A stretch of DNA of 64,000 nucleotides, from positions 1-64,000 of the IMG/VR virus record IMGVR_UViG_3300027770_001980. The stretch is one strand, 5' to 3'. The position numbers were made by a program, and so were the translations under genes. The notes beneath the pieces were generated by a model. It made no database searches and was not told the origin of the DNA. It was given only the letters and a program-made list of their open reading frames with translations. This document shows positions 8,144-60,481 of the stretch, piece after piece; position 1 is the first letter of the stretch; every line of letters starts with the position of its first letter.

Positions 8144-8527
8144 ATGTTAAACTCAATATGTAAAAATTGTTCAAAAGAATTTATTAAAGGTCGAAATACA
8201 ACAGGGACATACTGTTCACTACCTTGCACTTTTGAATCTCAAAAAAAAGAAAGAAGAGAAAATTTCTTAGAAGGAAAAATGGTTAACCGTGGATTAATGA
8301 AACAACATATGGTTGATATTCACAGTTGGCAATGTATGTGTTGTAAAAACACTGAATGGTTAGGAGTGCCAATTCCGTTGGAGTTGGATCACATTGATGG
8401 TAATGCAGGAGACAATCGACCTGAAAATTTGCGATTGCTATGTCCAAACTGCCATGCACAGACTCCAACACATAAAGCAAAGAATAAAGGCAATGGCCGC
8501 GGGAGTCGCGGATTGCCCTGGTATTAA
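8144..8527 (+). CDS. HNH endonuclease
   Basis: LELDHIDGNAGDNRPENLRLLCPNCHAQT with Cys pairs. Confidence 0.85.
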   Translation: MLNSICKNCSKEFIKGRNTTGTYCSLPCTFESQKKERRENFLEGKMVNRGLMKQHMVDIHSWQCMCCKNTEWLGVPIPLELDHIDGNAGDNRPENLRLLCPNCHAQTPTHKAKNKGNGRGSRGLPWY

Positions 8528-11258: not shown

Positions 11259-11266
11259 TATAAATA
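11259..11266 (+). promoter_or_regulatory. T4-like late promoter TATAAATA
   Basis: Exact octamer just upstream of the ATG; it also occurs at 13684, 49547, 52268 (+) and 27083, 44861, 51988 (-). Confidence 0.6.
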
Positions 11267-11271
11267 TTTTT

Positions 11272-11991
11272 ATGAAAATTGCAATATTACTATCCGGACA
11301 ACCAAGATTTACTCAAGAGTTTCAATTATTTTTAGATAATTTAGTAGGTTATGATCAAGCAGATTGGTTTGTTTACATGACCAATAATAATCACGATCCT
11401 TTTAAAGATAATCGCATTAAAATTCCAGAGACCTGGATAAATTATGAAATAGATTGGGCCAGAGAGACTATAACAAGAAATCTTCCTCCTAACAATTTTC
11501 TCAGACGTTTCGAAATATCGAATGTACACGAACAAATTTTTCCAACTCTTCGAGAAGAACATCTATCTGGTAATCAAGCTATTTTCAAAATGCACTATAA
11601 TATATTTAAAACAAATCAATTAAGAGAAGAATATGAAACCTCTTATAATTTTAAATACGATGCAATTGTTAGAGCCCGCCCCGATGTTGGACTTAATCAG
11701 ATAATAGATCTTCGAAAATTTGATTTGTCGACCAGGGGAGTCTTTATGCCTTGCCCTTTTTATGGACACCCAGGGAGAGAGTCTAATGATTTGATTGGAT
11801 TTGGTAATTCGGAGGTCATGTCTATTTACAGTAATGCCTTACATCATTTCAAAGAATATAGTGATGCTGGAGAAATAGTTTGCCCTGAAACACTATTATC
11901 ACGGCACTTGATTACAAATAATGTATCACGTATAAAATCTGATTTTAGTCACATTTTTCGAACTCTGCCTTTAGATCCTAAATGGTTTTGA
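11272..11991 (+). CDS. glycosyltransferase-like protein, paralog 1
   Basis: MKIAILLSGQPRF...KYDAIVRARPD...NDLIGFG; start reassigned out of tRNA-Phe. Confidence 0.6.
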   Translation: MKIAILLSGQPRFTQEFQLFLDNLVGYDQADWFVYMTNNNHDPFKDNRIKIPETWINYEIDWARETITRNLPPNNFLRRFEISNVHEQIFPTLREEHLSGNQAIFKMHYNIFKTNQLREEYETSYNFKYDAIVRARPDVGLNQIIDLRKFDLSTRGVFMPCPFYGHPGRESNDLIGFGNSEVMSIYSNALHHFKEYSDAGEIVCPETLLSRHLITNNVSRIKSDFSHIFRTLPLDPKWF

Positions 11992-13330: not shown

Positions 13331-13414
13331 GCGGGTGTGGTGGAATGGTATACACAGCAGACTTAAAATCTGCCGCTGAAAAGCATGCCGGTTCGAGTCC
13401 GGCCACCCGCACCA
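13331..13414 (+). tRNA. tRNA-Leu(TAA)
   Basis: GCAGA-ctTAAaa-TCTGC. Confidence 0.92.
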
Positions 13415-13518
13415 TATTGAAACACATTGTGGAGAGCACTGTGTAGATTGAGAAGGTTTGATTCCGACTCACTACATCACTCGGTATCCTGCGGCCGCAA
13501 CAGTGTGCTTCAATATGG
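13412..13518 (+). repeat. inverted-repeat-bracketed cassette B5
   Basis: CCATATTGAAACACATTGT / ACAGTGTGCTTCAATATGG; cargo TGTAG/CTACA helix with GGTTTGATTCC T-loop mimic. Confidence 0.75.
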
Positions 13519-13522
13519 TGTT

Positions 13523-13641
13523 ATATTAAAATATACTTTTCGTCTCCAGTAGCCCAAACCCGGGGGAATCGCATATTGAGAATGTGCATAGCACAACGGT
13601 ACAGCAAGCATAAGACACTTGTTGGAAGTATGTTTTAATAT
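13523..13641 (+). repeat. inverted-repeat-bracketed cassette B6
   Basis: ATATTAAAATATACTT / AAGTATGTTTTAATAT; cargo GCATATT/AATGTGC hairpin. Confidence 0.72.
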
Positions 13642-13647
13642 GATTCC

Positions 13648-13680
13648 CTGGCGTTCGTATAATGGATAATACAGGGGATT
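13648..13680 (+). pseudogene. 5' half of a split tRNA-Arg(TCT)
   Basis: CTGGCGT acceptor strand, D-arm, GGGGA-TT; its partner half is at 14447-14488. Confidence 0.8.
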
Positions 13681-13698
13681 TAGTATAAATAGATATAT

Positions 13699-13775
13699 GC
13701 GACTGTAGCTCAGTTGGATAGAGTACCCGGCTTCTACCCGGATTGTCGGGGGTTCGAATCCCTCCAGTCGCACCA
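13699..13775 (+). tRNA. tRNA-Arg(TCT), replacement copy inside the insertion
   Basis: CCGG-ctTCTac-CCGG, full cloverleaf. Confidence 0.88.
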
Positions 13776-13790
13776 TTTAGTAGAAAATGT

Positions 13791-14429
13791 ATGTATCAAA
13801 AACTAACAAACTGTAAGCATTGTAATATCTCTTTAGAGAGTATGAATGCCAACGAAAGGGCAAACCATTCGAGATGGTGTACATCAAACCCTAAACGGGT
13901 TGAATATGTAAATGCGCTGGCCAAGCATAGAGAAAATATTGTCGCTCCTCGAAATCAATTTGTTAAAGCAAAAGACGAGGGACGACCTGTTCCAAAAGGA
14001 ACAATGACCGGAAAACCCGGAACGATGTTAGGTAAGAAACATTCTCTGGAAACAAAGCAACATCTTAAAGAAAAAGCGTTAGCAAGCCCACATAGAAGAT
14101 TAGTTAGGTCCATTAGAAAATATACACAAAAGGATGGAACTATTGTTAATTTAGATTCTTCTTGGGAAGAAGCATTGGCAATTCGCCTTGATGAACTTAA
14201 TGTTAATTGGATCCGACCCAAGCCGATAAAATGGATAGATGACAATGGTATAACCCATAACTATTTTCCAGACTTTTATCTTGTTGATTTCGACGTATAT
14301 TTAGATCCAAAAAATCCTTATGCTATTAAGGCACAGGAAAGCAAAATAAAATGTTTGACAAAACAGATAAAAAATCTTATAATCATAAGAGGATTAGAAG
14401 AGTGTAAAAATTATACCCCTATAGTTTAA
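13791..14429 (+). CDS. putative homing endonuclease (NUMOD3-like repeat + PD-(D/E)xK domain)
   Basis: GKKHSLETKQHL; DSSWE...YFPDFYL...YLDPKN. Confidence 0.7.
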   Translation: MYQKLTNCKHCNISLESMNANERANHSRWCTSNPKRVEYVNALAKHRENIVAPRNQFVKAKDEGRPVPKGTMTGKPGTMLGKKHSLETKQHLKEKALASPHRRLVRSIRKYTQKDGTIVNLDSSWEEALAIRLDELNVNWIRPKPIKWIDDNGITHNYFPDFYLVDFDVYLDPKNPYAIKAQESKIKCLTKQIKNLIIIRGLEECKNYTPIV

Positions 14430-14488
14430 TGGTAAAACGGCGGATTTCTACTCCCTAAATAGCAGTTCGATTCTGTTACGCCGGACCA
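14415..14488 (+). pseudogene. chimeric tRNA: foreign 5' half + 3' half of Arg(TCT)
   Basis: 3' TCTAC-TCCCT...ACGCCGG-ACCA complements 13648-13680, not the adjacent ACCCCTAT...GGCGGATT. Confidence 0.75.
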
Positions 14489-14499
14489 AAGATTTTATT

Positions 14500-14589
14500 G
14501 CGAGCGAGACTTGGAGTCCGAGGGGTCTTATATGCCCTTTCCGCCAGATTAGCGGCTTTGAGAGAGTTCGATTCTCTCCGCTCGTACCA
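14500..14589 (+). tRNA. tRNA-Ile(TAT)-like with long variable arm
   Basis: GGGT-ctTATat-GCCC, short D-arm, extra CCGC-cagatta-GCGG hairpin. Confidence 0.65.
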
Positions 14590-14638
14590 CCTATCACAAT
14601 TAGGTTCTTTTGTTAAAATATCATATAATTAATATATT

Positions 14639-15340
14639 ATGAACAATGAAAAACATCAACCTATTACAGTGGTAGTGCCTACCATGTGGAGACATTCTCC
14701 ATTTTTAGATTTTGCACAGGACTTCTTAGAATTAAATGTAGTCGAACATTTAATCATCATCGACAATGATATCTCAAGAAGACCCAACCATCCGGTATTG
14801 ACCAATTCCAAAATAACTATTTTTGAATTTGGAAAAAATATATTTGTCAATCCTGCTTGGAACTTAGGAGTCAACAACAGCAAAACTAATATTGTTTGCA
14901 TATTGAATGATGATTTAAATTTTGATATCAGATTATTCAATAGAGTATCTAAGTTTATTAAACCTGATATGGGTGCAATAGGATTGAGTAACGGAATAGC
15001 AGAATTTGGACAAACAATTTTAACTGACGGAATGATCAATTTTGAACCATTTCATGGACAGATATGTGAAGGATTTGGTAATCTCATGTTTGTACATAAA
15101 TCTACATGGAAAGATATACCCGAAGGGTTGAATATCGCATATGGAGATAATTTCATTTTCGAACAAAATCTTTACAACAATCGAACAAACTATTTTATTG
15201 TTAATATGTTTCATCACCATGCAGCATCTACCACAGTTAAAGAAGTATTAAAAGATAAAGATGTGAAAGATGTTTTTTGGCTACGAGAAAGTCTTCTATA
15301 TAAAGACATCAAGGTCAAATTAATGAATAGAACATTTTAG
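14639..15340 (+). CDS. GT2-like glycosyltransferase
   Basis: VVVPTMW, IIDND, VNPAWNLG, LNDD, YGDNFI. Confidence 0.7.
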   Translation: MNNEKHQPITVVVPTMWRHSPFLDFAQDFLELNVVEHLIIIDNDISRRPNHPVLTNSKITIFEFGKNIFVNPAWNLGVNNSKTNIVCILNDDLNFDIRLFNRVSKFIKPDMGAIGLSNGIAEFGQTILTDGMINFEPFHGQICEGFGNLMFVHKSTWKDIPEGLNIAYGDNFIFEQNLYNNRTNYFIVNMFHHHAASTTVKEVLKDKDVKDVFWLRESLLYKDIKVKLMNRTF

Positions 15341-15466: not shown

Positions 15467-15895
15467 ATGTTAAAAGAATATACATGTAAAGATTGTGGTA
15501 AAGAAGGAAAAGAAAATTTTTATCAATATCGATATCAATGCAAATCTTGTTGGAATAAACGCACATATCAATCAAGTAGAGATAAATTAGATTTACTCAT
15601 ACACGAAAGAGGCGGAAAATGCGAAAGATGTGGATACAATAAATGCATGGATGCTTTACAGTGGCATCATATAGATCCTACAATTAAAGAGTTTGGAATA
15701 AGCAAACAACGAGGTGCATCGATAGAAGTATTACGAAAAGAAATTGATAAGTGTTCTTTATTATGTGCAAACTGTCATGTCGAGGTACATGCAGAAATGC
15801 GAAATAAAGGATATAAAGTTGTCAGAATTACCCATCCAGAATTTAAAGAAAGATATTTTTCTGGTAAGGGATTTTTAGATTTAATGCGGGTGTGA
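15467..15895 (+). CDS. HNH endonuclease
   Basis: CERCGYNKCMDALQWHHIDP...LLCANCHVEVH. Confidence 0.85.
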   Translation: MLKEYTCKDCGKEGKENFYQYRYQCKSCWNKRTYQSSRDKLDLLIHERGGKCERCGYNKCMDALQWHHIDPTIKEFGISKQRGASIEVLRKEIDKCSLLCANCHVEVHAEMRNKGYKVVRITHPEFKERYFSGKGFLDLMRV

Positions 15896-17159: not shown

Positions 17160-17891
17160 TTAAATCCATCTTGGATCCAATGGTAAATCTCTCAGAGAAT
17201 TATCAAAATTTCCGGGTGTATAAGAAATTTTGTTTGAATTTAAATGATGTCCAAGAATAGCTTCTGGACCAAAATCCAATACTTGTTTTTCATATTCTTC
17301 AAGATGATTTATGACATCCGAATAGATTGTCATAACATCAGAGTTTCCAAATGCAAATTGATCGTTTGACTGAGAAACCTCTCCATACCATCTATTGCCA
17401 GGCATGATAACAACTTGAGAACTTAGATCATAATTGTTGATATTTAATTCAATTGGTAATCCAATATCAGTTCGTGTTCTAATTACTGCATCATATTTAA
17501 AATTATTCTCTTGTTCGTAGTTTACTCTTAACTGATTAACCTTGTATAGATTATAATACATATTGAATATATTATCGGTACCTATACCTCGATAATCTCG
17601 AACAGGAGGCCATTGTTGAAGATGAACATCGGATATTTCAAATTTTTTAAGAAAATTGTTGTTTGGTAAATTTTCAATTATTTTGGATGTAGCCCATTCA
17701 ATGTCATAATTAATCCATTTATCGTGAGGTGGAATAATATGAGAATTTTTTATTTTTAAGTCTTCTCTGGTAGGACTGTTGGTAAGATACACAAACCAAT
17801 CTGCCTGATTGTAACCTTTTAAATTATTTAGAAAATTTCTGAGGTCGCCGGTGAATCTCGGTTCTCCAGGAAGTAGTATAGCTATTCTCAT
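17160..17891 (-). CDS. glycosyltransferase-like protein, paralog 2
   Basis: MRIAILLPGEPRFTGD...KYDAVIRTRTD...NDQFAFG. Confidence 0.6.
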   Translation of the reverse strand: MRIAILLPGEPRFTGDLRNFLNNLKGYNQADWFVYLTNSPTREDLKIKNSHIIPPHDKWINYDIEWATSKIIENLPNNNFLKKFEISDVHLQQWPPVRDYRGIGTDNIFNMYYNLYKVNQLRVNYEQENNFKYDAVIRTRTDIGLPIELNINNYDLSSQVVIMPGNRWYGEVSQSNDQFAFGNSDVMTIYSDVINHLEEYEKQVLDFGPEAILGHHLNSNKISYTPGNFDNSLRDLPLDPRWI

Positions 17892-18910: not shown

Positions 18911-20326
18911 ATGAACGCATTTGTAAACGCAATCGCAAACCAAGAAGCCCGTACTGCCAATGGCATGAAGGCTCGTAAGTCAACCGCCAACAAGTGTGTT
19001 GACCTGTTCTACAACATCGGTGCAAGCCGTGGTAAGAACATCATCCCTGCATTCACTGCGGCTTATGTTGAAAACTTTGACATGGCTCTGCGTATCGCAC
19101 AATGGGCTCGTGATGTCCGTGGTGGTGCAGGCGAACGTGAACTATTCCGTAGTGTACTTGTACACTTGGAAAAGACTGATCCAGATGCCGCTATGGCTCT
19201 GTTGAAGAAGATCCCAGAAGTGGGTCGTTGGGATGACATCTTTGTCTTTCAAACTCCTGCGTTGAAGTCTGCTGCTTACACAATGTTGGGTGACGCACTA
19301 CGTGCATCAAACGGATTGGCAGCTAAGTGGACACCACGTAAGGGCAAGATCGCAGCAGAAGTCCGTGAGTTCTTCGGAATGAGCCCAAAGTTCTACCGTA
19401 AGAGTCTTGTGGCTCTGACCAAGGTCGTTGAAACACAAATGTGTGCCAAGGACTGGGACAACATCAACTTCAGTCACGTACCAAGCGTGGCTGCTCGTAA
19501 CTACAAGAAGGCTTTCGGACGTAACACTCCAAAGTTTGCTGAGTACGTGGCTGCATTGGTTAAGGGCACACCTGGTGTGAAGGTTAACGCTAACGCGATT
19601 TTCCCACACGATGTGTTGAAGGGTCTAATTGGTTCGTACAACCGTACCAAGTTGTCTAAGACAGATCTGGATCACATCACTGCACAATGGAACGCTTTGC
19701 CAAACTACGTTGGAGATGCCAGCATCCTTCCAATCGTGGACGTAAGCGGCTCTATGAGTTGCAAGGCAGGTGGTGAAGGTACTGTTACCTGTATGGATAT
19801 TTCTGTTAGCCTTGGCTTGTACTTGGCTGATAAGAACAAGGGCGTGTTCAAGGACACATTCTTGACATTCAGTGACAAGCCTGATTTGATGACTCTTAAG
19901 GGCGACATCGTCCAAAAGTTGGATCAAATGGAAACAAGCGACTGGGGTATGAGCACAAATCTACACGCAGCATTTGAAAAGATTCTGAGTGTGGCAGTTA
20001 AGGGCAATGCTCCTCAAGAAGACATGCCAGCAATGGTACTAATCTTGAGCGACATGCAATTTAACCAATGTGTTAAGCATGACGACAGTGCCATGGAAAT
20101 GATCGAACGCAAGTTCGAAGCAGCCGGATACACTTGTCCAAAGGTTGTTTTCTGGAACCTAAACAGTTCTGGCAATGTACCAGTCAAGTCAGATAAGAGC
20201 GGTGCCGCTCTTGTAAGTGGATTTAGTCCAGCAATCATGGCCAGCTTGCTGGGTGCGGATGTGGAACAATTCACTCCAGAAGGTATCATGCGTAAGACTG
20301 TAATGGTTCCACGCTACGATCTGTAA
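18911..20326 (+). CDS. DUF2828-family Ro60/TROVE-like vWA protein
   Basis: T-NG start, VDLFYNIGASR, ARDVRGGAGER, GRWDD, AKWTPR, MIDAS DVSGSM, SDMQF, FWNL, LVSGFS; strongly biased codon usage. Confidence 0.8.
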   Translation: MNAFVNAIANQEARTANGMKARKSTANKCVDLFYNIGASRGKNIIPAFTAAYVENFDMALRIAQWARDVRGGAGERELFRSVLVHLEKTDPDAAMALLKKIPEVGRWDDIFVFQTPALKSAAYTMLGDALRASNGLAAKWTPRKGKIAAEVREFFGMSPKFYRKSLVALTKVVETQMCAKDWDNINFSHVPSVAARNYKKAFGRNTPKFAEYVAALVKGTPGVKVNANAIFPHDVLKGLIGSYNRTKLSKTDLDHITAQWNALPNYVGDASILPIVDVSGSMSCKAGGEGTVTCMDISVSLGLYLADKNKGVFKDTFLTFSDKPDLMTLKGDIVQKLDQMETSDWGMSTNLHAAFEKILSVAVKGNAPQEDMPAMVLILSDMQFNQCVKHDDSAMEMIERKFEAAGYTCPKVVFWNLNSSGNVPVKSDKSGAALVSGFSPAIMASLLGADVEQFTPEGIMRKTVMVPRYDL

Positions 20327-44082: not shown

Positions 44083-44841
44083 TTAAAGAATTTTATTTTT
44101 ACATTGGTTACCGTGCCATCTTTTATACATAGACGGACTTGCTAGTTTGTTACAGTGTCCGCATTTAATCTTAGGAATATTTTTCAATTTTTGTTTATGT
44201 TCTTCGGATAATTTTTTACCTTTTAATTTTTCTGATATTGCTTTCTTATGATCTTCTGATTTTAATATCCCCTTATTGTAAGAATGCCCGGCATTTTTAT
44301 TAGATATTAATTTTTTAGATTCGTCTGAATGAGTCTTTCCAAACATAAAATTATTTTCACCCGAATTAGATTTAGAAATTTTTTGTTTATGGGCATCTGT
44401 TAACACTTTTCCAGAATTCCATGGTTGTTTTCCTAAGTGAGCATTAGACATTCTTTGTCTAGACTCAAGTGAATGAAATTTTCCATACATTGGATTCCCT
44501 GATCTGGACATAGCCATAGACTGTTCGTTTGCAAATATTTTCCTCGAGTTCTCATACAACTTTGATCTATATCTATTTTGATAAGGATTGTTAAGATTTG
44601 ATAGCGCATTGAGCGCAAAAATCATCGATCTTTTATTTTTTCCAAAAGTAATTTTAGTTAATAATAGATGGCAAATAAAATGTTCTTTGGCAGTTAGGTC
44701 TACTAAATTTTCTTTATTGTTTGACCCTCCCATTGACCTTGGAATAATATGATGTGATTCAACATATCCGTCGATAACTCTTGACTTTGCCCTATATATG
44801 ATGTTATAATAATATTTGAAATACTTATTTTCGACGAACAT
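44083..44841 (-). CDS. HNH homing endonuclease with NUMOD3 repeats
   Basis: ESHHIIPRSMGG.N...NLVDLTAKEHFICH; GKTHSDESKK repeats. Confidence 0.9.
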   Translation of the reverse strand: MFVENKYFKYYYNIIYRAKSRVIDGYVESHHIIPRSMGGSNNKENLVDLTAKEHFICHLLLTKITFGKNKRSMIFALNALSNLNNPYQNRYRSKLYENSRKIFANEQSMAMSRSGNPMYGKFHSLESRQRMSNAHLGKQPWNSGKVLTDAHKQKISKSNSGENNFMFGKTHSDESKKLISNKNAGHSYNKGILKSEDHKKAISEKLKGKKLSEEHKQKLKNIPKIKCGHCNKLASPSMYKRWHGNQCKNKIL

Positions 44842-45914
44842 TGCAATCTCCCTGTGTGTTTATTTATACTAACGAAGTCCTACTTGTTTACAAAATGACA
44901 ATCAAAAAAATTGGGTTTGCTTGCAAAATTTCAGAATTTAATTCTAAAAATGAAGTAGTATCTATCCCAGAATATAATTCTAGAAGCACTACAGTCTCTT
45001 GGTTAAATAGACAGAGTAAAGATGTTGCTGAAACAAAATTGTGGGAATTAATGGAACACAATATTGAAGCGGCTAAAAAGGCGGTAGAATATGTTGGAAA
45101 TTTGGAAAAAAGTCTTAGGTGTTTTCGCCTTAGTAGCGATATGCTGCCTGTTTATACCCAGTCTGATTGGAGTTATTTCTGGCGTAGGAATGATGTTCGC
45201 GACTATTGTGATCGCAATCTTCTCGTTGTTGGGGATAGTGCTCGTAGCAATAATGTACGCCTTAGCTTTCATCCTGGGCAGTTCACTGTTCTTGCTTCTA
45301 TTAATCCCGGTATTGTTGACAGGTCTATAGATGAGTTCGAATATCACGCCGATCTCGCCCGCTGGATGGGTTTTGGAAAATCGTTCCAAGATTTCAAAAT
45401 CAACGTCCACATATCGGGTAAAGAAGGCCCTGATGGTATCCGCCGCGCCTACAACCGACTTAGCACCGAAGCCCGTAATTGTATTACGATTGAAAACGAA
45501 GAGAACGCATGGGGATTAAATGATTGTCTTACACTTACTGATATCTTACCTATCGTCCTTGATGTCCATCATCATTGGATCAACTCGGGAGAATATATTT
45601 CCCCTAATGACCCGCGTGTTCAACAAGTTATTAATAGTTGGAGGGGTGTTCGCCCTACTATGCATTACAGTGTTAGCCGCGAAGATATACTCCCAGGCTT
45701 TTCCACTGTTGATCGCCCAGAGTTGGAGTTATTGCTAGAAGATGGATACAAAAAGCAGAAACTCAGAGCACATTCTGATTTCTACTGGAATACAGCAGTG
45801 AACGAATGGGCACTGAGCTTTTTGGATCGATTCGACATCATGGCAGAGAGTAAAGGCAAGAATTTAGCCAGCTTCGCATTGCACGAGCAGGCTAAACAAT
45901 TAGGCCTTCTGTGA
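44841..45914 (-). CDS. uvsE: UV-damage endonuclease
   Basis: IGFACK, FRLSSD, RLSFHPGQF, TIENEE, LDVHHH, MHYS, HSD. Confidence 0.9.
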
Positions 45915-56609: not shown

Positions 56610-57342
56610 TTTAAATGAAGGACTAAGATCCGGAGACCTTGAAAACTATGTTTCGGAACTCTTTACTGTTGACCAATATAGAAGCAAAATGGGCGAAGAC
56701 AGTGATGTTATAGTTTTAGGATTCCATGTGCGTGAAAAGAATCCTGCTATTGATATGATGGAATTTATCGAACGTGGATATGATTTTATTCTCGACGCCG
56801 ACATGAGTGCCGGTGAAGAAAATGACGGACAATATCAAGTGTTTGTTGAAATTGAAAGAACCCCTAATCTCAAAACACAATTGAAAGAATTGTTAGGCGG
56901 AGTTGGACAATTATGTAATTGCAGTGAATGGAGATTCCGCTATCAGAAGTCTAAAAATAGTTTGGAATTTAATGAAGAAAATATTACCGAGGCTATCCCA
57001 ATGACTAAACAAGATTACGAAGGCAAGATTATGGAAATTAAAAATACCGATATTAGAGAATTCTTTGATCAAGGTATAGTCAATGTCGATCTTGCGGAGG
57101 ATAACACACTGATATTCAGCAAACCATATGCTGGCGATATCGCTGCTAAATTTATCGCGATTGGCGATTATGAAGATGTTAAGAATACTGTTCCTGGACC
57201 TATCTCTTTAGATGAGAGCAGCCAAAGCCAAATGTTCTTCTTGACCAAATATATTGGCAATTATGAAATTAATAAAATTGGTAATAAATTCCTAATCAGG
57301 AATGGAGATAGGGCAGTAGTCTTAGAAAAAGATAGGTGGTAA
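56602..57342 (+). CDS. hypothetical protein
   Basis: Start at MRNLNEGL. Confidence 0.7.
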   Translation: MRNLNEGLRSGDLENYVSELFTVDQYRSKMGEDSDVIVLGFHVREKNPAIDMMEFIERGYDFILDADMSAGEENDGQYQVFVEIERTPNLKTQLKELLGGVGQLCNCSEWRFRYQKSKNSLEFNEENITEAIPMTKQDYEGKIMEIKNTDIREFFDQGIVNVDLAEDNTLIFSKPYAGDIAAKFIAIGDYEDVKNTVPGPISLDESSQSQMFFLTKYIGNYEINKIGNKFLIRNGDRAVVLEKDRW

Positions 57343-57343
57343 C

Positions 57344-57805
57344 ATGTGGTTAATGGATTTCATGCCTGACTGGATATTCCACGCAATACTATTGGCAGGT
57401 TCACTGGGCTTAATAGCCAGTTTCATATTAAATTTTATTCCTACTTTCAAACTTTATCATTTACCTCTGCAGGTCATATCTGTATTGCTAATCGCATTAG
57501 GTATTTGGTTCGAAGGTGCTATGAGTAATCAAGCAGAATGGGAGGCTAAGGTTAAAGATTTAGAAGTCAAGGTAGCAGAAGCACAGGCACAAAGCCAAGA
57601 AGAAAATATCAAGATCGTAACTAAAACGGTTAAACAAATACAAGTGATTCGAGAACAAGGACAAAATATTATCACCTATGTGGATAAGGAAGTAGTCAAG
57701 GACCGAGAGGTCGTTAAGTTTGTAGAGAACTGCCCTATTCCCGAAATCATCATCAGCACACATAATGCAGCAGCATTGAATAAAATCATCGAGGATAAGA
57801 AATGA
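57344..57805 (+). CDS. putative inner-membrane spanin (Rz-like)
   Basis: N-terminal TM helices, coiled coil, C-terminal Cys; precedes a lipoprotein and the endolysin. Confidence 0.55.
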   Translation: MWLMDFMPDWIFHAILLAGSLGLIASFILNFIPTFKLYHLPLQVISVLLIALGIWFEGAMSNQAEWEAKVKDLEVKVAEAQAQSQEENIKIVTKTVKQIQVIREQGQNIITYVDKEVVKDREVVKFVENCPIPEIIISTHNAAALNKIIEDKK

Positions 57806-58092
57806 ACTTGATTAAATTATTCGTCCTGGTAATTTTTATCATACTGGCATTTTTAATGACAGGATGTAGCACTACTGTTCCTGTAACAGCAAGATTCCCA
57901 GATGCACCTGTGTTGATATTAGAAAAATGTCCACCATTGAAAACCATCGAAGGTGAAAAAGTTTCTATCACTGATCTCATTAAAACCGTCACCCAAAATT
58001 ATACTACATATTACGAATGTGCAGAAAAGAATAATGCTTGGGTAGAATGGTATCAAACACAAAAACCAATATTTGAAAAGGTAGGAAAATAA
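57802..58092 (+). CDS. putative outer-membrane spanin (Rz1-like lipoprotein)
   Basis: Lipobox LMTG-C, Pro-rich segment. Confidence 0.65.
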   Translation: MNLIKLFVLVIFIILAFLMTGCSTTVPVTARFPDAPVLILEKCPPLKTIEGEKVSITDLIKTVTQNYTTYYECAEKNNAWVEWYQTQKPIFEKVGK

Positions 58093-58716
58093 ATGTCAAA
58101 CTTTATTTTAAACAAATCACAGTTATCACAACTTATCCCAGGTAATCCATATATTGATTATTGGTATCACGCATTAGAACAAGCATTGCCGGATTATGAT
58201 ATTAATACTCCAAACCGTGTCGCTGCTTTCATGGCACAATGTGCTCACGAATCCGGTGGGTTTAGAGCACTGAAGGAGAACTTGAATTATCGTGCCGTTA
58301 CGTTAAGAAAAGTATTTCCTAAATATTTCCCCAGTGACGATATCGCTAACGCATATGCAGGTAAACAAGAAATGATCGCTAACCGTGTTTATGGTGGACG
58401 TATGGGCAATGGAGATGAAAATAGTGGAGATGGATTTCGTTATTGTGGACGTGGTTTGATACAACTTACCGGTAAACAAAATTATCAAGCATTTGCCGAC
58501 AGTATTGAAACACCAGTAGAAGATTTGCCAGAATATTTGGCCACATTTGAAGGTGCTGTCCAAAGTGCTTGCTGGTTCTGGGAAAGTAACAATTTAAATC
58601 AATTTGCCGACAAAGGTGATATTTTAACAATGACTAAACGTATCAACGGTGGTACTATTGGTTTAGAGGATCGTATCAAACACTACGAACATGCATTACA
58701 TGTATTAGGAGCATAA
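58093..58716 (+). CDS. GH19 family endolysin
   Basis: FMAQCAHESGGF, ENLNY, YCGRGLIQLTG, TKRINGG. Confidence 0.92.
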   Translation: MSNFILNKSQLSQLIPGNPYIDYWYHALEQALPDYDINTPNRVAAFMAQCAHESGGFRALKENLNYRAVTLRKVFPKYFPSDDIANAYAGKQEMIANRVYGGRMGNGDENSGDGFRYCGRGLIQLTGKQNYQAFADSIETPVEDLPEYLATFEGAVQSACWFWESNNLNQFADKGDILTMTKRINGGTIGLEDRIKHYEHALHVLGA

Positions 58717-58717
58717 C

Positions 58718-59170
58718 ATGTCAACACAAGAACATGATATTGAAGCATTAGTTAAAGATGTAAAAGAATTACGGGATGCTCAGATGGCTGCTGCCAGTAA
58801 AGGTGGCCTGGTCGAGAAGATAACCTTTGCAGGAATACCCATCATGTTTTCATGCATAGTGTATCTCATGACGGCATTGAGTGCAGCCAGTCATGATCTA
58901 ACTGTGCTACAAAGCAAAATCAATGTGGTAGTGAGTGCCGAAAACAAGGCCATTCCGCCTCAAGGCACCACTATCGAGATGGAAAAGATCAAGGAAGAAG
59001 CAGCACTGGCCCGAGCAGCAATGACCCTGGAGCGTGTGAAAGACTTTGCTGCCATGAGAGAAGAATCAGCATTGAGCCGAGCAAAAATCCGTGAAGACTC
59101 GGCCTTGGCCCGTGCAGATTTGGATAGTCGCATTGATTTACTTGAATACAAAGTATTTGGCAAAAGATAA
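58718..59170 (+). CDS. membrane protein with coiled coil
   Basis: One TM segment. Confidence 0.6.
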   Translation: MSTQEHDIEALVKDVKELRDAQMAAASKGGLVEKITFAGIPIMFSCIVYLMTALSAASHDLTVLQSKINVVVSAENKAIPPQGTTIEMEKIKEEAALARAAMTLERVKDFAAMREESALSRAKIREDSALARADLDSRIDLLEYKVFGKR

Positions 59171-59181
59171 AGGAGCAGAAC

Positions 59182-59718
59182 ATGGCAGACGAAGCAAAAC
59201 CATTATCACGTAGCGAGCGTGAAGCACAGATCAAAGACAAGTCGGGATTAGTCATTGTCTTTATGGCATTATTTTTAGCAGGTAATACCTACATTGCTAA
59301 TAACTTTAGCAGTATTGCTCAAACTAACTTATTAAAAGCCAGTAACACATATGGATTTTATCAATCTAAAAGTATCAAGCAAAGTATTGCTGAAGGGCAA
59401 TTAGAAGATGCCAAACGAGATAAGGACAAAGATCGTATCGCTAAATTAGAAGCAAAGATTGCTCGATATGAAAGTGAACCTGACAAAGGTGAAGGTAAGA
59501 AAGAACTTCTTGAAAAAGCAAGAGCACAAGACGCTGCTCGCGATGAAGCAAGATTGCATACTCCATGGCTAACATTTGCTGGTATGTTATTCCAATTAGC
59601 AATCGTGTTGTTATCTGCCGCTATATTAACTGTCAATAACAACATGTATAGAGCCAGTTGGGTAGTCGGCGGAGTAGGACTGTTTCTAATGGCACAGGGC
59701 TATTGGCTATTCTTTTAA
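59182..59718 (+). CDS. DUF4337-like membrane protein
   Basis: YQSKSIKQ, FQLAIVLLS, three TM segments. Confidence 0.6.
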   Translation: MADEAKPLSRSEREAQIKDKSGLVIVFMALFLAGNTYIANNFSSIAQTNLLKASNTYGFYQSKSIKQSIAEGQLEDAKRDKDKDRIAKLEAKIARYESEPDKGEGKKELLEKARAQDAARDEARLHTPWLTFAGMLFQLAIVLLSAAILTVNNNMYRASWVVGGVGLFLMAQGYWLFF

Positions 59719-59785
59719 CTAAACTACATACTTAACTTTCCGCTCTACCGCTTTAAATAATAGCATACTATTATGGAGCGGCACA

Positions 59786-59989
59786 ATGTGGATTACAAAA
59801 CCCGGAATAATGATCTCCGCAATCGCGACATTATTCCTTACGACCGCTGATCCACAACCAAAAAGCCCTGATAAAAATAAAGAATACGTATGTGTTCGTT
59901 GGTCAGGTTCCGGTGACTTTAGTCAAAATCAACCCAGCATCTGTTTACAATGGGAACTAAAGGATAAGCCTTGGTTTAGGAAGACTTAA
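59786..59989 (+). CDS. small exported protein
   Basis: Signal-like N-terminus, two Cys. Confidence 0.5.
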   Translation: MWITKPGIMISAIATLFLTTADPQPKSPDKNKEYVCVRWSGSGDFSQNQPSICLQWELKDKPWFRKT

Positions 59990-60481
59990 ATGATAGATCC
60001 GTTTACCGCCTTTGCGTTGGCCCAAGGTGCTGTTGCTGGTATCAAACAGGCTGTGAAACTGGGCAAAGACATCAACGGACTCATACACGAGTTTAGTGAT
60101 TTTTATAAGGCCGCAGATGAAGTTCATAATGCCAGTATAAAATTAAAAGTTCAAAGCATCAGGATGAGTGATGCCGAAATTGGAGCACAGGCTTTGAAAA
60201 TGGCTATGGCATCCAGAGCATTAAGACAGCATGAAAAAGAATTAAAAGATATATTGTTCTGGTCCGGCAATGCTGATGTTTACTATGAAATGCAGGCCGA
60301 ACGCAAACGCATGATGGAAGAACGTCAGGCAGAAGAAAAACGTATAGAAGAACAGAAACAAAAAGACCGAGAGATGAAGGCTCAGGCTATAATGGCCACA
60401 CTATGGCTCATGGGAAGCCTTTGTATCGTCATTCCCCTCTGCACTATCCTATTCCAATTAATAACCGTAAAACATCTGTAA
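59990..60481 (+). CDS. membrane-anchored coiled-coil protein
   Basis: MIDPFTAFA; C-terminal TM. Confidence 0.65.
   Translation: MIDPFTAFALAQGAVAGIKQAVKLGKDINGLIHEFSDFYKAADEVHNASIKLKVQSIRMSDAEIGAQALKMAMASRALRQHEKELKDILFWSGNADVYYEMQAERKRMMEERQAEEKRIEEQKQKDREMKAQAIMATLWLMGSLCIVIPLCTILFQLITVKHL

Follow-up and report, generated by a model that had tools for sequence, protein, structure and literature searches.

The window, the 64-kb stretch of DNA analysed here, is the first 64 kb of a 221,356-bp single-contig virus record with 39% G+C, and the sequencing runs that hold it are freshwater and lake metagenomes. It carries 41 tRNA genes on the + strand between 5650 and 18512, together with T4-like long-tail-fibre and baseplate proteins and a homolog of the T4 late sigma factor gp55 (E 2.4e-8). 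Within the tRNA array, two separated segments constitute the halves of a tRNA-Arg(UCU) gene, and the sequence between them holds a motif TATAAATA, a second tRNA-Arg(UCU), an ORF for a predicted endonuclease and a fragment of a further tRNA (Table 1). All of these elements, which an earlier note had described from the sequence alone, were confirmed.

Table 1. Features of the interrupted tRNA-Arg(UCU) locus (window coordinates)
Coordinates	Strand	Feature	Remarks
13648-13680	+	5' half of the disrupted resident tRNA-Arg(UCU)	nt 1-33: acceptor 5' strand, D arm, anticodon-stem 5' strand, loop nt 32-33
13676-13681		Left copy of the direct repeat GGATTT	6 nt
13681-14446	+	Inserted segment	766 bp; cassette plus donor scar
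13684-13691	+	TATAAATA	Matches the T4 late-promoter consensus; 7 nt upstream of the inner tRNA
13699-13775	+	Inner (replacement) tRNA-Arg(UCU)	77 nt; the only intact Arg(UCU) gene in the genome
13791-14429	+	Endonuclease ORF	212 aa; N-terminal CxxC...H...C zinc-finger-like motif, NUMOD3-like segment, predicted C-terminal PD-(D/E)xK nuclease domain
14415-14446	+	5' fragment of a long-variable-arm tRNA(UAU), 'B'	32 nt; overlaps the ORF's last codons and stop codon
14442-14447		Right copy of GGATTT	Crossover point between donor-like and recipient-like sequence
14447-14488	+	3' half of the disrupted resident tRNA-Arg(UCU)	Anticodon through CCA
14500-14589		Neighbouring tRNA of the same unusual type as B

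When joined, the two outer segments give a canonical 75-nt sequence that ARAGORN calls tRNA-Arg(tct), with a 7-bp acceptor stem CTGGCGT/ACGCCGG (one G-U) and an anticodon stem GGGGA/TCCCT, and the intron mode of the same program recovers the gene in place with a 766-nt interruption between nt 33 and 34. The match between the halves is not due to chance: a 30-mer spanning the junction occurs in 14 IMG/VR contigs, of which eleven carry the whole 75-nt gene with 0 mismatches and three carry it with a compensatory change of one acceptor pair. A metagenome scan for the intact gene together with the window's own right flank returned four contigs (L125-L128). One of them, L126, is collinear with window 8.7-25 kb at 78-99% identity and has the same tRNA order, Leu(caa), Arg(tcg), Thr(ggt), Leu(taa), Arg(tct), Ile(tat), Met, Leu(tag), Thr, Gly, Val, Pro, Met, with its Arg(tct) gene intact and no cassette. 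The segment between the halves is thus a genuine insertion. The flanking direct repeat is GGATTT, one base longer than the GGATT of the earlier note.

Aligning Logan contigs to the locus shows a joint that skips exactly 766 nt, with 6 ambiguous letters at the joint, in three independent DNA runs in which the filled form also occurs, including the likely source sample. The presence of both forms in one sample raises the possibility that the layout is an assembly artefact joining a donor-type and an empty-type phage. We consider this extremely unlikely, because the two parental sequences share only 6 nt at the junction, far below any assembler's word size. Moreover, an 820-nt Logan contig of the filled form covers 13652-14471 with 0 differences, an independent IMG/VR contig is identical (L031/L045), and a contig from another sample (L129, see below) has the same junction.

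The inner tRNA-Arg scores 65.6 bits with Rfam tRNA, and differs from the outer gene in the D arm and in all five anticodon-stem pairs. The ORF matches PHROG 15137 'endonuclease' (5e-10), and an alignment of 43 homologs shows an invariant CxxC...H...C motif and an invariant block containing E123, FPD158 and D169-P-K171 (residue 1 of the alignment corresponds to window 13800); all invariant catalytic and zinc-binding residues are retained in the window's copy. NUMOD3 (PF07460) is below Pfam's cut-off in this copy (14.6 vs 20.4 bits), but is found in 16 of 43 homologs at E <= 0.05 (best 1.5e-5), and Phage_endo_I is found in 4 of 43. The AlphaFold model (AF2, pLDDT 86.9) places residues 100-209 on the PD-(D/E)xK fold, with the best structural matches being the TnsA catalytic domain (Z 9.2, rmsd 2.7 A over 102 residues, residues 100-202; Foldseek probability 1.00), VRR-NUC (7.6) and Vsr (7.3), followed by Bax1 and Hjc. 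TnsA, T7 endonuclease I and Vsr-type nucleases nevertheless have different biology (transposition, junction resolution, mismatch repair), show 14% sequence identity or less, and none is linked to tRNA genes. No GIY-YIG or HNH signature was found (Pfam, PHROGs and NCBIfam gave no GIY-YIG match), and neither a phmmer search of PDB sequences nor NCBIfam returned a meaningful hit. All 957 homologs at E <= 1e-20 are unnamed. Among GenBank phages, DNA searches gave only generic tRNA matches, while protein searches gave two distant homologs, in phiWae14 (44%) and in a Stenotrophomonas phage (30%), neither of which is annotated. Neither blastn nor tblastn found paralogs or a source of the insert elsewhere in the genome.

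The position of the insert in the anticodon loop, where bacterial group I introns with homing endonucleases sit (for example the I-Ssp6803I intron in tRNA-fMet), and the undamaged state of the two halves could suggest an intron, self-splicing or protein-assisted, with the outer tRNA rejoined at the RNA level. The evidence speaks strongly against this reading. An Rfam scan of 13400-14700 at E <= 1 finds only tRNA-type matches, only about 125 nt of the insert is neither tRNA nor ORF, and the right end of the insert is a fragment of an unrelated tRNA. In relatives the outer halves decay or the 3' half is missing altogether (as in loci L131, L047, L048 and L064), which would not be tolerated if the outer gene were expressed by splicing. 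RNA data were uninformative: the only RNA run with signal has a depth of about 0-3 over the locus and shows no joint, and although one 217-nt contig spans the 5' half into the inner tRNA, DNA carry-over cannot be excluded. A functional chimera of the B fragment and the Arg 3' half (14415-14488) was likewise rejected, since ARAGORN finds no gene there, the acceptor strands cannot pair, and Rfam matches only model positions 8-63.

How could this arrangement have arisen? The 32-nt fragment is the exact 5' part of a ~92-nt tRNA with anticodon UAU and a long variable arm, which is intact in 29 other viral contigs. Contigs carrying close variants of the endonuclease reveal a donor-like layout: in L131 and L132, whose protein is 95% identical, the window's left flank, the same 5' half, TATAAATA, the inner tRNA and the endonuclease are followed by a complete B-type tRNA(UAU) and then by Met and Leu(tag), with no 3' half of the Arg gene. 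A three-way alignment shows the window following this layout up to GGCGGATTT and the empty-site relative L126 from GGATTT-CTACTCCC onward. L131 is 92.7% identical to the window over the cassette, and is therefore donor-like, not the donor itself. The two halves in the window remain 100% identical to the intact gene, whereas neighbouring sequence differs from L126 by 11-13%, which is consistent with a recent event. The same scarred element is also found on a 346-kb contig (L129) that shares nothing with this genome except window 13680-14489 (90.6%). There the B-fragment scar lies inside a different tRNA-Arg allele, whose outer acceptor strands remain complementary through a compensatory change; the sequence next to the junction is shared, while the distal T arm and acceptor differ. 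The scarred element has therefore moved horizontally.

These observations refine the earlier note in two respects. The note had the insert bounded by microhomology, but only the right junction is a microhomology join, the left one being shared with donors and best explained by homology in the 5' half. What the note described as the 5' half of another tRNA is a scar copied from the donor's neighbouring tRNA(UAU).

The nested layout extends to the wider endonuclease family. Eighty viral loci encode homologs (40-100% identity), 57 of them unique, and in 32 of the 57 ARAGORN calls a tRNA-Arg(tct) within 200 nt upstream on the same strand, while the downstream neighbour varies (Met, Ile(tat), Arg(cct), Trp, Gly, Leu, Ser and others). 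Exact TATAAATA lies upstream of the endonuclease in 31 of 57 unique loci, against 0.04 expected per 240 nt, and usually ends 6-11 nt (mode 7) before the inner tRNA; in the present genome it is the rarest of 56 same-composition 8-mers. Immediately upstream of the motif, many loci keep a fragment that best matches the first ~33 nt of Arg(tct) genes and ends after loop nt 32-33. In several loci (L059, L062, L065, L072, L084/117, L085/86, L095) a matching 3' fragment follows the endonuclease, whereas in others it is truncated or absent and the anticodon stem of the remnant is degenerate, as expected for a dead gene. Because the intron mode of ARAGORN yields many chimeric false positives in tRNA arrays, we retained only hits straddling the cassette with complementary acceptor strands and checked them against a cross-locus control: complementary outer halves occur in 7 of 211 same-locus pairs, against 17 of 9,554 cross-locus pairs. 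Endonuclease and inner-tRNA divergence are correlated (Mantel r = 0.375; 0 of 2000 permutations reach it), and the inner gene always belongs to a different sequence class from the outer remnant.

Ordinary illegitimate recombination in a rearranging array, with the endonuclease gene as a passive or defunct passenger and its position inside tRNA-Arg due to chance, could be proposed instead. The array is indeed plastic, since the window and L126 differ by several indels and two HNH ORFs are also present, and a 6-nt microhomology join needs no site-specific enzyme in principle. This possibility appears remote given the recurrence of the nested layout far above the control rate, the presence of the same scarred element in an unrelated genome, the retention of all invariant residues in the window's ORF and the maintenance of 957 homologs as intact ORFs.

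We propose, with a probability of roughly 0.8, that the segment is a free-standing homing-endonuclease cassette, consisting of a late-type promoter, a tRNA-Arg(UCU) and a PD-(D/E)xK/NUMOD3-like endonuclease, which has been copied into the anticodon loop of the phage's resident tRNA-Arg(UCU) gene. This supports the reading of the earlier note, which saw a selfish cassette that destroys its target gene and complements it with a cleavage-resistant copy, although cleavage of the intact gene and the resistance and function of the spare copy remain inferred. In the inferred mechanism, the endonuclease cut the intact gene in or next to the anticodon loop during co-infection, the left end was repaired by homology with the donor's 5' remnant, synthesis ran through the cassette into the donor's tRNA(UAU), and the new strand annealed to the other broken end through the 6-nt microhomology. 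By inference, the resident gene is dead, as its halves cannot be rejoined by any recognisable intron, and AGA, the commonest arginine codon in this phage's long ORFs (35%), is decoded by the cassette's own tRNA, which would escape cutting because its D arm and anticodon stem differ from those of the target. The promoter function of TATAAATA, driving late transcription from about the first nucleotide of the tRNA, is likewise inferred. With both halves now flanking it, the element could home into further intact alleles by ordinary homologous repair. Some observations complicate this picture. In L056/L060 a 55%-identical homolog lies 164 nt downstream of an intact A-type tRNA-Arg with the same anticodon arm as the window's target, so that specificity must differ between clades or lie outside the anticodon arm, or that copy is inactive. 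Outer remnants also have very different anticodon-stem sequences across loci, which argues against one simple shared recognition sequence.

The closest known counterpart is T4 SegB, a free-standing homing endonuclease in the T4 tRNA gene cluster, which sits between tRNA-Arg and tRNA-Ile (PMC2988022), the same neighbourhood as in the donor layout, contains a NUMOD3 motif and drives co-inheritance of adjacent tRNA genes (PMC2330249). SegB, however, is a GIY-YIG enzyme that recognises the T-psi-C motif and cuts at the 3' ends of many tRNA genes, and its homing replaces a region without leaving a split target gene around the cassette. In an unlikely alternative, the present enzyme homes to a generic tRNA feature such as the T-loop or to an intergenic site, and the linked tRNA-Arg(UCU) is beneficial cargo, for example a copy resistant to a host anticodon nuclease or a supply for the rare AGA codon, the split gene being a by-product of imprecise repair. 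The role of SegB in amplifying anti-defence tRNA loci (PMC13096335), the intact A-type tRNA in L056/L060 and the varied tRNA genes downstream of the cassette are compatible with this view. Against it, at least 15 different outer alleles are broken at the same structural position, the window's right junction falls at that same nucleotide, and the outer remnants are specifically Arg(tct)-like rather than random tRNAs.

Other systems share individual aspects of the arrangement. In intronless homing (T4 SegF/gene 56, SegG/gene 32, SegE and others; PMC2988022), an endonuclease gene appears to lie next to a resistant allele of its target, and cleavage of the sensitive allele in a co-infecting phage would lead to co-conversion of both (Belle et al. 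2002; Liu et al. 2003). There the sensitive allele is overwritten by gene conversion, whereas here the endonuclease and the putatively resistant allele sit inside the sensitive gene, which persists as two dead halves. The group I intron encoding I-Ssp6803I in the Synechocystis tRNA-fMet also places a PD-(D/E)xK homing enzyme in an anticodon loop, but the structural match is distant (2ost, Z 4.6), there is no sequence similarity and no ribozyme was detected in our case, the present enzyme has additional zinc-finger and NUMOD3-like modules, and gene function would be restored by a spare gene rather than by splicing. Aeh1 mobE (PMC2988022) similarly splits nrdA without an intron, but the two protein pieces probably reassemble into an active enzyme (Friedrich et al. 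2007), while a tRNA split in its anticodon loop has no known way to reassemble in bacteria. We found no description of a homing cassette carrying a replacement tRNA or splitting a phage tRNA gene in the literature searched, which was incomplete.

A more speculative possibility is that the tRNA-Arg(UCU) genes of freshwater T4-like phages are the arena of a serial-replacement arms race, in which each clade of this endonuclease family would destroy one sequence class of the gene and install a different, immune class. The disrupted outer gene of L084 has the same acceptor stem and D arm as the window's replacement copy, and some loci keep nested remnants, which hints at successive replacements. 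Such pressure might have driven tRNA structural innovation, including the ~80-84-nt UCU tRNA-like genes without a normally placed D arm that some cassettes carry. The element would then be a third way, besides introns and inteins, for a homing endonuclease to live inside an important gene: by bringing a spare.

Homing endonucleases are thought to survive inside important genes only by hiding in self-splicing introns or inteins, or by sitting beside the gene and overwriting it. The element described here looks like a hybrid solution, which inserts at the inferred cut site like an intron, leaves the target permanently broken, and is inferred to neutralise the cost by carrying a divergent copy of the same tRNA. 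Metagenomes happen to hold the empty site, a donor-like relative, the product and a secondary spread of the same scarred product, and such a near-complete natural record of a homing event resolved by microhomology is unusual. The family is large, entirely unannotated and tightly linked to tRNA-Arg(UCU), and its enzymes may be compact, tRNA-gene-specific nucleases. tRNA half-genes in phage arrays can be footprints of such elements.

The left flank of the split gene is itself polymorphic in the population. A 123-nt segment upstream of this gene is absent in the syntenic relative L126, in the contig L127 and in contigs of the sequencing runs X1 and X2 (joint 13519->13643), but is present in the donor-like relative L131. 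Relative to L126, the window also has about 1.4 kb extra between tRNA(UAU) and tRNA-Leu(tag), which includes a weak GT-A-like ORF and an HNH endonuclease ORF (PHROG 2255, 1e-28). With the second HNH ORF taken into account, the array hosts several mobile nucleases. A second TATAAATA in the array lies immediately after tRNA-Phe and upstream of an ORF of PHROG 13607 (function unknown), a paralog of which is found on the opposite strand. The large ORF directly after the tRNA array has DUF2828 and DUF7788 domains and matches PHROG 850 'RNA-binding protein' (1.7e-138), raising the possibility of a Ro/TROVE-like RNA-binding protein placed next to the tRNA genes. Elsewhere in the window, one ORF has a strong UvdE UV-damage endonuclease match (Pfam 6.8e-38; PHROG 8420).

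Coordinates of features in the window and in related sequences
Sequence	Positions	Strand	Feature
Window	8144-8527		HNH ORF
Window	11259-11991		Second TATAAATA in the array and ORF of PHROG 13607
Window	13520-13642		Polymorphic segment upstream of the split gene
Window	13699-13775		Inner replacement tRNA copy
Window	14500-14589		tRNA with anticodon UAU
Window	14590-16010		Extra segment relative to L126
Window	14639-15340		Weak GT-A-like ORF
Window	15467-15895		HNH endonuclease ORF
Window	17160-17891	-	Paralog of the PHROG 13607 ORF
Window	18911-20326		ORF with DUF2828 and DUF7788 domains
Window	44841-45914		ORF with UvdE match
L126	3639-3729		tRNA with anticodon UAU
L131	1458-1549		tRNA with anticodon UAU
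L084	1152-1922		Disrupted outer tRNA
L137 (LC778249.1)	57052-60060		Region with the homolog and the uncalled tRNA sequence

The 90-92-nt tRNA with anticodon UAU, which also occurs in L126, L131 and loci L015-L044 and is widespread in these freshwater phages, has a ~20-nt variable-arm hairpin (class-II-like) and a very small D arm. It is not reported by Rfam's general tRNA model, the best match being tRNA-Sec at 23 bits, below threshold. AUA, the codon it reads, makes up 31% of Ile codons here. Some cassettes (loci L063, L065, L067, L088/L094, L100, L101/L111 and L107) carry, in the region between TATAAATA and the endonuclease, ~80-84-nt tRNA-like genes that are not called by ARAGORN. These have a 7-bp acceptor stem, T arm, CCA and a UCU anticodon arm, but no normally placed D arm; a D-loop-like GG-containing segment lies 3' of the anticodon arm. 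L063, L065 and L067 show a compensatory change in a helix that encloses the anticodon arm.

A 44%-identical homolog, annotated as hypothetical, is present in the cultured Aeromonas phage phiWae14 (L137). On the opposite strand just beyond its stop codon lies an uncalled A-type-like tRNA sequence with a CTTCTCA loop and a ~26-33-nt hairpin-forming insertion in the anticodon arm. This is a possible tractable system or an alternative immunity allele. In locus L084, the disrupted outer tRNA has the same acceptor stem and D arm as the window's inner replacement copy, and loci L046 and L133 appear to hold two fused 5' remnants upstream of the cassette. Both observations suggest serial invasions of tRNA-Arg(UCU) by different clades of the family.
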